Source: Schmidtea nova
Lineage: Eukaryota
Length of the DNA: 64,000 nucleotides
Assembly: GCA_044892505.1 (NCBI GenBank)
Contig: CM097883.1
Coordinates: forward strand, 284,146,001 to 284,210,000
Direction of reading: 5' to 3'
Shown here: in pieces, positions 42,005 to 45,372 of the stretch
Numbering within the stretch: the stretch's first letter is position 1
Layout of the letters: each line of letters begins with the position of its first letter
Notes under the pieces: generated by a model
Told to the model about the DNA's origin: nothing
The model's database searches: none
The model's input: the letters and a program-made list of their open reading frames with translations, nothing else
Program-made: the position numbers and the translations under genes

Positions 42005-42163
42005 GGTGGGGCTTGTGTGAATAAGGGGTGTCTTCCAAAAGAAATGATGTATAATACAGCGATGATTAGAGAGATAGGGCGAGAGGTTAAAAATTATGGA
42101 TATAAAGTCAATTATGGGTGTTTCAACTGGGAAATCATTAAGCTAAAGCGAGATAGTTATATA
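42005..42163 (+). pseudogene. GSR: Glutathione reductase fragment (redox-active disulfide motif)
   Basis: GGACVNKGCLPKEMMYNTA...YGY....[16 protein letters not shown] vs GR GGTCVNVGCVPKKVMWNTA...YGF....GKFNWRVIKEKRDAYV; in a different frame from the following ORF. Confidence 0.8.
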
Positions 42164-45100
42164 TAAAAAATCTGAATAATAGTTTTGAAGTAAAATCTAC
42201 ATGTGGGGATACGTTTTTGGGTGGGGAAGATTTTGATAATGTGCTTTTACAATGTATCGGTAATGAATTTAAACGTGATCAAGGCGTTGATGTTAATAAA
42301 GACCCTATGGCTATACAGAGAGTTAGAGAAGCAGCTGAAAATGCTACAATTGAATTGTCATCAGCTGTTCAAACGGACATTAATCTTCCATATTTGACGA
42401 TGGATAATACAGGACTTAAACATTTGGGTTTAAGGTTCACACGGTCAAAGTTAGAGCAATTAGTGGAGCACCTAATTAAGAGAACAATTGAACCTTGTGA
42501 AAAAGGTATTAAAGATGCAGAGGTAAAGACATCGGACATTAAAGAAGTGTTGTTAGTTGGTGGGATGACAAGAATGCCTAAAGTTCAAGAAACTGTACAG
42601 AAACCTTTCGGTAGAGTTCTTAGTAAGAGTGTGAATCCAGATGAAGCTGTTGCAATGGGTGCAGCAATAGAGGGAGGAGTTCTTGCTGAGTATGTGAATG
42701 AGGTATTATTGCTAGATGTTACACCGCTTTCGTTGGGTGTTGAAATTCGGGGCGGAGTTTTCAGTAAGTTAATTAATCGAAATGCGACTATTCCCACCAA
42801 GGAATCAGCTCTCGGTCTAGTTTTGAGATTGGGAGGGGGAATGCAAATATTTGTAAAAACGTTAACAGGGAAAACTATTACCCTGGAAGTTGAATCAAGT
42901 GACACAATAGAAAAGGTAAAAACGAAAATTCAAGACAAAGAGGGAATCCCACCTGATCAACAGAGATTGATATTTGCGGGTAAACAATTGGAAGGCGGAA
43001 GAATCTTGGCAGATTACAACATACAAAAGGAATCTACTCTTCATCTTGTTCTTCGTTTAAGAGGCGGTAATGATGAGGAAGAGTTCAAAAGTTTATGGAC
43101 CCGTCGGCGATCTAAAAAATGGAAAGTAACTCGAGCGCGTAACTTATTGTTGGCAGAAATGGTCGGGGAAATAAAGGACACACTTGTATTATATGAAAAA
43201 GAGTTTGAGGATACATTGGACGAGTGGCTAAGACTTGTCGAGTTGTGTGACAAATTAAATAAGAAGGAGGAATTAGAATTAGTGGAAAAAGATATCTGGG
43301 AGCTCGAAACAAAAAAAGAAGAGATAGATAAGATAATGCAAAAAAGAACAGAACAAAGTGTTGTGAGCGAGGGGTCAAAGACATCGGAATATGAGGCGCC
43401 AAGAGAAAAGAAGAGTTTAAATCGGTTGCAGAAAATAAAGATTCCGATTTTCGATGGGAAAGTTGTCGAGTTTGAGACGTGGAAAGCGGCCTTCAATACG
43501 GTAATAGATACGGCAGATGGAACAGCCGAAGATAAAATGCTGCATCTTAGGCAGTACTTGTTAGGTGAGCCTCTGAGATTGATAGAGCCACTGGGTTATA
43601 CCGCCGAAGGCTACAAGATGGCGAAAGAGAAATTGGAAAGGCGTTACGGAGGTGAAGAACGTAGCTACCTGATTATGTTAGAAGCTGTAGACAAGTTTCG
43701 GCCGGTTCGCGAAGGAGAAATAAAAGACTTGGATAGTTTCGTTGGATTGTTGGAATCCATGGAGGTACGGTTTAAGGAAATTGGAAGAGACGAGGACCTA
43801 CAGAGAGGCTGTCTATTGCACCAATTGTTAAAGAAATTGCCAGCTTCTCTACCTATGCAATGGAAAAGAGAGCAAGCAACAGATGAAAGTGAGGAGTCAG
43901 TAAAACGGTTAAAGGAGTGGGTGCAAAGGGAAGCCGAACTAATACGAGCGACAAATGAGATATTATATGGATTTGATCAGGAAAAGGATTTCAATTGGCA
44001 AGACGGGCAGAGAAACTTCAAGGCGTCTGAAAAGGTTGACAGGAAGAGGTACTCACACTTTACAACCGCTTGCAATGATGTAAAACGAAACGCGAGTAAG
44101 GGTGGAGAACGAGTAACGGCACTAAGAGGTGGGAAACCAAATGTGAACAGGTCAATGGAGACTTGTCAAAGAGAACAGTGTGAAGAGGAATGTATCGAGA
44201 GTTTTGCACCTAAAGCTCAGGAAGTAGTTCTTGGTGAGGTTCGAACTGGTGATGGTGAATTGAATTCAGGGCGAAGTAAGAATAGCGCAGTGATTAGTGG
44301 TGTGTCTGGTGAAATGATTGATAACTCTGAGTCGGTTGATATTGCAAGCGAAGATGGAATAAATACTTCTTCAAACGATTTAGTACAAGAAGTAATGACG
44401 GAAATTGAACCTACAATGTCAGTAAAAAATGAGCAAGCAGTAAGTGAATATAATTTTGAAGAAAACGGCATTGTCGATGAGAAAATTGTAGAAAATATTA
44501 ACGATATTAAAGAAAACTGCATGGTCGATGAGAAAATTGTGGAAAATATTAGCGATACTGAAGAAAATTGTAATTTTGGGGAACTTATTGGAGAGAACTC
44601 TTTTAATGGTGGAAATATTAGGCAAGGAATAGTCAAAAATTCCAATGTTGATAAAAGTGACGAAGGAAAAGTTATTAAAAGTGAAACAAATCTAGAAGAT
44701 AATGGAAAAGTTATAAAAAATGTCAGTATAAAATGGGAAAAAGTAGAAACGATTGAACTTATAAATTGCCCAGTTATAATTGCAGAGAAAACAGGTAGTG
44801 AGCAGTCAGCTTATCTTCCGATAGAAGGTAAAGTTGCAATTAGTGGCAATGAAATGGAATCATTTGACAAAGTTGATCATGGTTCAAATGTTGATAATGA
44901 AGTTCTTGTTGATAAGTCGGATTTAGTAACACGACTTCATTCAAAGATAGAAAATCTTGAAAGTAAAATAAAAACGGGCGAATTGGAATATAAAAGTGAA
45001 ATTAGAAGGTTAGAAGAAAAGATAAACAATTGTGCGGAAAGTGTAGAAACATTAGCAGTGGAAATGGAAAATATAAACAGCATTAGCGATAAATTGGTAA

Positions 45101-45372
45101 AGGTAAATTTGGAAATAAAAATGTCCATATGTTGGAGGGGGTGTATCCAGGATAGTACAAGAGAATTAATGATCGAAGAAATGTTCAAAGACAAAAACAA
45201 ATATAAGCCGAAGTGGAAGAATAAAGTTAGGAAGTTGAAGGTTGGCCCCCCAGAGATGAATAGGTCGGTTGATCCGCTAGAAGGGATCAAGGGGGGGGGA
45301 AATGTTTCAGCCAAAGTTTGCCTGAGCAAACTTTGGCTATTTTTGTGTGTGTATGTTAAAAATGTCTTATAG
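42157..45372 (+). CDS. Chimeric open frame: mtHsp70 fragment - partial Ub - ubiquitin - BEL/Pao-type Gag - acidic tail
   Basis: No stop from 42157 to 45372 (track ORF 1051 aa from 42217; first ATG at 42307); ends inside the 3' LTR. Confidence 0.85.
42181..42798 (+). other. HSPA9: Mitochondrial Hsp70 (mortalin) fragment, intronless
   Basis: [79 protein letters not shown]; several lesions at conserved positions. Confidence 0.9.
42841..43068 (+). other. UB: Ubiquitin (76 aa), preceded by a 14-aa C-terminal remnant of another Ub unit (42799-42840)
   Basis: [76 protein letters not shown]; remnant [14 protein letters not shown]. Confidence 0.98.
43069..44100 (+). other. gag: BEL/Pao-type Gag (DUF1759-like)
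   Basis: [26 protein letters not shown]...[46 protein letters not shown]. Confidence 0.85.
45289..45302 (+). promoter_or_regulatory. Polypurine tract
   Basis: AAGGGGGGGGGAAA directly abutting the TG of the 3' LTR. Confidence 0.85.

Follow-up and report, generated by a model that had tools for sequence, protein, structure and literature searches.

Results

An uninterrupted frame of 1071 codons inside a BEL/Pao-type retrotransposon

We analyzed a stretch of 64,000 nucleotides from Schmidtea nova (GenBank assembly GCA_044892505.1, contig CM097883.1, positions 284,146,001 to 284,210,000 of the forward strand), here referred to as the window and numbered from its first nucleotide. Its longest open frame lies on the forward strand at 42157–45372, inside a retrotransposon bounded by long terminal repeats (LTRs), and comprises 1071 sense codons followed by a single stop. 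The other two forward frames of this interval are interrupted by 90 and 124 stops; at the given base composition, a 1071-codon frame would arise by chance with a calculated probability of approximately 2e-40. A previous sequence-only reading of this DNA had reported the absence of stops over some 3.2 kb, which was borne out, while the LTR retrotransposon context, the missing pol genes, and the non-autonomous nature of the element had been overlooked.

Pfam analysis of the translation product identified an HSP70 match at residues 9–219 (profile positions 209–420 of 599, E = 6.5e-82), a ubiquitin match at residues 231–302 (E = 5.7e-28), and a DUF1759 match at residues 432–573 (E = 3e-11). Along the frame, a piece of mitochondrial-type Hsp70 is followed by a 14-residue tail of a ubiquitin repeat, a complete ubiquitin, a Gag domain of BEL/Pao type, and a tail of 431 residues. 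The frame crosses the polypurine tract and ends 70 nucleotides into the 3' LTR, so that its final 23 codons and the stop lie inside the repeat.

Comparison of the window with itself revealed a perfect direct repeat of 733 base pairs (bp) at 40919–41651 and 45301–46033. Within it, the 5' LTR (40921–41651) and the 3' LTR (45303–46033), both in forward orientation, comprise 731 bp each, are identical in 731 of 731 bases, and start and end with TG...CA; an AATAAA motif is located near the 3' end of the 5' LTR. The element spans 40921–46033 (5113 bp), has a G + C content of 37% compared with approximately 30% for the window, and is flanked by a duplication of the target site, with ACTAA at 40916–40920 repeated at 46034–46038. 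The leader between the 5' LTR and the long frame (41652–42156) contains a putative primer-binding site, TGG..., which begins at 41656, 4 nucleotides past the LTR; the window holds no tRNA gene for comparison. A polypurine tract at 45280–45302 directly precedes the 3' LTR. A tandem duplication or a misassembly was considered as the origin of the 733-bp repeat and rejected, as the target duplication, the TG...CA ends, and the polypurine tract fit an LTR insertion.

No protease, reverse transcriptase, or integrase was matched by Pfam between the LTRs, and the element thus does not contain the set of A17 peptidase, reverse transcriptase, RNase H, and integrase that makes up a Pao-type pol. The identity of the two LTRs indicates a recent insertion, and because pol is absent, this copy must have been moved by the enzymes of an autonomous partner. 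Since pol is missing as a whole and the end of gag has been replaced, the copy is non-autonomous. The sequence at 40921–46033 is therefore a BEL/Pao-type LTR retrotransposon that is both young and non-autonomous, a derivative rather than a complete member of this group.

A complete ubiquitin directly precedes Gag

The ubiquitin unit (42841–43068, residues 229–304 of the product) comprises 76 residues ending in LRLRGG, 70 of which are equal to those of canonical animal ubiquitin. The residues L8, I44, K48, K63, V70, and the LRLRGG end are all kept, and an AlphaFold model showed the beta-grasp fold with predicted local distance difference test (pLDDT) values of 82–87. The unit is a true ubiquitin rather than merely a ubiquitin-like domain. 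It is preceded by 14 residues (42799–42840) that match the end of a ubiquitin repeat in a search of PDB sequences and end in GGG; their first nine nucleotides coincide with the patch in which the Hsp70 piece is joined. This stretch aligns with the end of a preceding repeat, which points to capture from a polyubiquitin transcript. The arrangement of a remnant followed by a full ubiquitin with its key residues had been noticed in the sequence-only reading and was confirmed here.

The Gag domain begins immediately after the ubiquitin (43069–44076) and was assigned by Pfam (DUF1759 at 43450–43875), by its relatives, and by AlphaFold. A word-based search with Gag alone gave a single weak match; the relatives described here were obtained by an exhaustive search with residues 305–640, which identified 2570 relatives with a best identity of 40%, some of them polyproteins with Pao peptidase, reverse transcriptase, and integrase domains. 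The likeness is confined to residues 305 to approximately 640 and stops short of the zinc-knuckle region present in the relatives. In the AlphaFold model, built with 50 relatives (mean pLDDT 87.9), three long N-terminal helices are connected by a disordered link to a capsid-like helical bundle. The best fold match was the PNMA2 capsid (E = 4.5e-3, probability 1.00, template modeling score 0.51–0.53), followed by the Copia capsid and dArc1.

The remainder of the product is an acidic, coiled-coil tail of 431 residues (44077–45369) with no stop, versus 41 and 61 stops in the other forward frames; it contains a 51-nucleotide tandem repeat at 44459–44567. Residues 641–1071 had no match in Pfam, in the PDB, or in 150 Gag relatives, and the tail may be a further captured coding piece. 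The earlier description of the part behind the ubiquitin as Gag accordingly holds for residues 305 to approximately 640 and not for those beyond.

The ubiquitin–Gag junction is found in related elements

The best 150 of the 2570 Gag matches were searched with the ubiquitin of the window. Six of them (P0002, P0003, P0006, P0033, P0089, and P0134), with Gag identities to the window of 31–40%, have a ubiquitin that ends exactly at the start of Gag, and in all of them the junction lies at the same residue without gaps. In the contigs L002–L004, L006, and L007, the ubiquitin is complete and in the frame of Gag, even where the gene caller had started the protein inside ubiquitin. The frame of L003 runs on into a protease-like region; hence, the ubiquitin–Gag layout also occurs in elements of the autonomous type. 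A neighbor-joining tree built from 88 Gag cores placed every sequence with a ubiquitin in one split of 8 tips; in 71 of 100 bootstraps, this split had at most 9 tips. On this evidence, the position of ubiquitin immediately ahead of Gag is shared by the lineage and not an accident of the window copy. Another close Gag relative, P0005 (L005), was considered as an eighth ubiquitin carrier and rejected: it has a KLKGG-S motif at the junction and no ubiquitin homology upstream, so that the motif is a possible remnant only.

The seven ubiquitins, including that of the window, differ from the canonical sequence at 6, 15, 21, 32, 34, 37, and 38 of 76 positions. All seven have L73 and G76, and six have G75. 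Basic residues prevail at positions 72 and 74, whereas conservation is poor at H68, and Ile occupies position 44 in only two of six. By simple arithmetic, the 13 invariant columns, which include L73 and G76, compare with approximately 3 expected at equal rates. Directly behind G76, the seven sequences have N, G, N, S, M, S, and S and in no case Pro; acidic residues come next.

The ubiquitin has Met at position 1 in two of the seven sequences (window and L004); of the other five, three have Ile there, one has Gly, and one has Ser. The number of codons open upstream of ubiquitin amounts to 228 in the window, 214 (counted from an ATG) in L002, 105 in L004, 27 in L007, approximately 17 (from an ATG) in P0003, 13 in L003, and approximately 7 in L006. 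Judging from these frames, ubiquitin would usually be internal in this lineage rather than N-terminal. In L002 (protein P0006), the leader at 85–726 holds a diverged fragment of cytosolic Hsp90 corresponding approximately to human residues 487–555. This is a second, independent chaperone fragment at the place that Hsp70 occupies in the window; the other leaders are short and unrelated. The Hsp90 fragment sits directly before a possible remnant of a ubiquitin tail. In P0005, Gag is followed by CCCH zinc fingers and a CFAP58-like coiled-coil fragment, which suggests that the lineage often takes up host pieces. A profile search with the ubiquitin-containing alignment was swamped by polyubiquitins and yielded nothing on ubiquitin–Gag fusions.

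The leader of the window copy is a fragment of mitochondrial Hsp70

The first part of the frame (42181–42801) encodes the nucleotide-binding lobe II, the linker, and the start of the substrate-binding domain of a mitochondrial Hsp70 (mortalin), as identified by Pfam and by a search of PDB sequences, in which mitochondrial stress-70/mortalin was the best match over approximately residues 215–444. The nearest sequences are planarian mortalins with 82–84% identity (Dugesia japonica D1GJ91 and a Logan transcript), followed by those of parasitic flatworms (approximately 75%) and other animals (69–74%). This ranking points, with moderate confidence, to a planarian-like, free-living flatworm as the host. 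The in-frame fusion to Hsp70 proposed earlier is thus correct with regard to homology; what is present is an internal fragment, and complete chaperone domains are absent.

Seven real mitochondrial Hsp70s have 145 invariant columns in common; the captured piece departs from them at 18 of these, and it carries 29 private changes versus 5 and 6 in two planarian genes; therefore, it is not under chaperone constraint. Part of this excess may be attributable to divergence of the host lineage, since the comparison genes are not the true parent: L001, the closest planarian gene compared, shares 73.6% nucleotide identity with the piece, silent sites are saturated, and L001 is not its parent. The join between Hsp70 and ubiquitin lies in a patch of 9 nucleotides, in which the mortalin gene L001 and the codons for K63-E64-S65 of ubiquitin match at 8 of 9 bases. 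The resemblance of Hsp70 (IPTKKS) and ubiquitin (IQKES) at this point, previously pointed out for the protein sequences, therefore holds at the DNA level.

Further features of the element and its surroundings

The 5' LTR contains, at 41438–41617 of the forward strand, a fragment resembling the N-lobe of the HECT domain of UBE3A/E6AP (Pfam HECT, profile positions 11–72 of 306, E = 1.4e-7; UBE3A HECT in the PDB, E = 4e-8). The piece comprises 60 residues of the N-lobe only, does not include the catalytic lobe, and is repeated in the 3' LTR at 45820–45999. It is the third host-gene piece in one small element and again derives from the ubiquitin system.

A frame of 199 codons starting with ATG (40247–40846) ends 75 nucleotides before the 5' LTR. 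Its product has coiled-coil and basic stretches and no family match, and it probably belongs to the sequence into which the element was inserted. A frame of 322 residues whose product holds a Med26/TFIIS-N-like domain is present in three copies on the minus strand (29826–30794, 57608–58579, and 61499–62470). Two of these are identical and lie in a direct repeat of 3.6 kb (55856–59458 and 59744–63349, 99% identical), and the third copy is 90% identical. The window is dense in mobile elements, with other retroelement remains at 11754–12761 (+), 17412–19472 (−), and 48293–50450 (+); these comprise a frame with three CCHC zinc knuckles, a frame of 686 codons with a reverse transcriptase domain, and weak matches to DUF7041 and reverse transcriptase. 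The region 34000–36200 is unlike its surroundings in its G + C content of 45% and its strong bias of C over G (654 C versus 298 G), and includes a frame at 35266–36069 with no family match. Arrays of repeats of approximately 150 nucleotides, whose copies are 80–90% identical, were found at 46341–46555, 54400–56500, and 59700–60450, and TA microsatellites adjoin several masked runs of N (36988, 47433, 52442, and 53595).

Discussion

A proposed role of ubiquitin in the release of Gag

We consider it fairly probable that the complete ubiquitin is a module that is cut by host deubiquitinases and thereby releases Gag from a variable leader. Cellular deubiquitinases cleave linear ubiquitin fusions, among them the natural precursors UBA52, RPS27A, and polyubiquitin, behind G76 as long as the following residue is not Pro; in the window, G75-G76 is followed by Asn (GG-N). 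In the proposed scheme, host deubiquitinases would cut after G76 of ubiquitin during or soon after translation, and Gag would be released with a defined N-terminus from any upstream sequence. As the cut would depend on ubiquitin alone, the leader ahead of it would not be bound to a particular sequence and could take in parts of plentiful host mRNAs, for instance that of Hsp70 in the window and that of Hsp90 in a relative. The host pieces would have been joined when reverse transcriptase changed templates among co-packaged RNAs, at places where these share a short identical patch. For the window copy, synthesis may have passed from the ubiquitin of the element to a host polyubiquitin mRNA, into the end of the preceding repeat, through the 9-nucleotide patch to the mortalin mRNA, and back.

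The idea that ubiquitin lets host deubiquitinases release Gag and so makes gene capture tolerable had been put forward in the sequence-only reading, and the conserved junction, the presence of G76 in seven of seven sequences, and the variable leaders match what it would lead one to expect. Its further suggestion, that an N-terminal Asn acts as a degron and tunes Gag stability, found no support. Asn is a destabilizing N-terminal residue under the Arg/N-degron rules; it follows the ubiquitin only in the window and in P0003, the others having G, S, M, S, and S, and one of the two sequences with Asn has no G75. Because Asn after GG is not conserved, we do not treat it as a designed feature.

Several observations weigh against release of Gag by deubiquitinases as a function of this arrangement. 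No ATG is found in the long frame before codon 51, and 18 ATG triplets lie between 41652 and 42306; given these positions, the Hsp70 piece may be untranslated. That it has stayed open could be explained by its youth, as a rough estimate gives a chance of about 1 in 6 that a piece so diverged would be free of stops. In two relatives, no in-frame ATG lies at ubiquitin or ahead of it, one relative has lost G75, and the relatives all derive from short ENA/JGI metagenome contigs with a G + C content of 37–39%, like the 37% of the element. The derived residues common to pairs of ubiquitins are few (0–7 per pair), so that renewal from host polyubiquitin mRNA is indistinguishable from purifying selection. 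Finally, a single copy was seen: none of six possible window products was present in a protein collection by exact look-up, and two exact junction patterns run against metagenome contigs gave no second copy.

Alternative explanations

Translation could begin at or near the Met of ubiquitin itself (codon 229), in which case the Hsp70 piece would be an untranslated leader that is still open since its capture was recent, and ubiquitin, an N-terminal module as in the natural fusions with ribosomal proteins, would aid the yield or folding of Gag before being removed. The Met kept at position 1 in the window and in L004, the lack of an ATG ahead of codon 51 together with the many ATGs upstream, the frame of L006 that opens only approximately 7 codons before ubiquitin, and the relaxed constraint on the Hsp70 piece (18 of 145 invariant columns altered) are all compatible with such a start. 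We nevertheless regard it as rather unlikely, because five of the seven ubiquitins have no Met at position 1 and the frame must therefore open upstream in most relatives. Moreover, codon 51, the first in-frame ATG of the window frame, and the further ones at codons 82, 137, 140, and 167 would lengthen the product anyway, and the two independent chaperone pieces are both in frame, although an ascertainment bias is possible in this respect. It is also conceivable that the element is a functionless, dead mosaic that arose through template switching and persists as a non-autonomous passenger, with a ubiquitin that looks conserved through recurrent recombination with host polyubiquitin mRNA. The star-like divergence of the ubiquitins with few derived residues in common would fit a mosaic of this kind, as would the nearly canonical ubiquitin of the window with its remnant of a preceding repeat, the patchwork of host pieces (HECT, Hsp70, and ubiquitin), and the host-like pieces that the relative P0005 likewise holds. 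Repeated capture would, however, not reproduce a gapless junction at the same residue in all seven sequences, and ubiquitins with 32–38 changes in 76 positions are clearly not fresh captures, yet keep L73 and G76. With a frame of 1071 codons, including the tail of 431 codons, that is far beyond chance, and with identical LTRs that speak for recent mobility, a dead mosaic appears improbable.

A different view would be that ubiquitin is not a cleavage site and stays on Gag as an intrinsic signal that recruits, for example, the proteasome or sorting machinery able to bind ubiquitin. Ubiquitin-like domains that remain attached to their proteins generally do not have a GG end; among the seven ubiquitins, G76 is found in seven and G75 in six, and Pro never comes next. 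Positions 8 and 44 are hydrophobic in most of the seven, but H68 is poorly kept and Ile44 is present in only two of six. The HECT fragment in the LTR might likewise be taken as a sign of a ubiquitin-based signal; as a fragment of 60 residues it does not, however, include the catalytic lobe. In the retrovirus literature, Gag ubiquitination and HECT ligases are tied to particle release (PMC3751857, PMC2940739). Taken together, we judge a permanently attached ubiquitin to be very improbable and retain the release of Gag by host deubiquitinases as our preferred explanation.

Relation to known systems

The element shares with BEL/Pao elements (Belpaoviridae; Pao, BEL, and Sinbad of Schistosoma, PMC554778) the TG...CA ends of the LTRs, the target duplication of 5 bp, the polypurine tract, and a Gag with DUF1759. 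It differs from them in having neither pol nor a Gag zinc knuckle, and in carrying a ubiquitin before Gag, an Hsp70 leader, a HECT piece in the LTR, and the tail of 431 residues. The PNMA2 capsid, the Copia capsid, and dArc1 have the same two-lobed helical capsid fold, but their identity to the Gag of the window is only 12–16%, they derive from Ty3/Gypsy or Copia elements, and none of them has a ubiquitin.

With polyubiquitin, UBA52, and RPS27A, the window product has in common a complete, GG-ended ubiquitin fused head-to-tail to a following protein. Here, in contrast, the cargo is the capsid protein of a retroelement, and ubiquitin is internal behind a leader in most relatives. In cytopathogenic pestiviruses, ubiquitin captured from the host marks a site for processing by host enzymes; the likeness is one by analogy only, since these are RNA viruses with sporadic insertions by RNA recombination, whereas the ubiquitin before Gag is a trait of a retroelement lineage. 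No pestivirus protein was among the matches from the searches with the window protein, and no dedicated sequence comparison was made.

Host-gene capture by LTR elements, as in maize Bs1 and the retroviral gag-onc fusions, resembles the present case in that host coding pieces are in frame, the products are non-autonomous, and template switching is the simplest route. Unlike in those examples, a single element of small size combines at least three separate host pieces, and what was captured precedes a ubiquitin by which it could be removed. The nearest published context is that of the planarian Burro elements, which carry host-like domains (PMC6431247). There are precedents for LTR elements that capture host genes, for viruses that use ubiquitin as a processing signal, and for genes that encode ubiquitin fusions. 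A full-text literature search, whose coverage was incomplete, found no report of a ubiquitin before a BEL/Pao Gag, nor of a retroelement lineage that combines such a ubiquitin with an exchangeable leader.

Implications for retroelement biology

As a wider and more tentative proposal, to which we give somewhat less than even credence, an internal ubiquitin may have allowed this BEL/Pao lineage to leave the first cleavage of its polyprotein to host deubiquitinases, and the 5' leader may have become a free slot that repeatedly takes up host fragments without harm to Gag. Retroelements are thought to process their polyproteins by their own aspartic protease within the particle. If the proposal is true, this lineage would depart from that scheme by having host enzymes process the polyprotein early, and would form, among retroelements, the equivalent of the ubiquitin insertions known from some RNA viruses and of the cellular ubiquitin-fusion genes. 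The proposal would also explain how elements can tolerate host coding sequence taken up in frame at their 5' end, and would thus bear on the shuffling of host exons by mobile elements.

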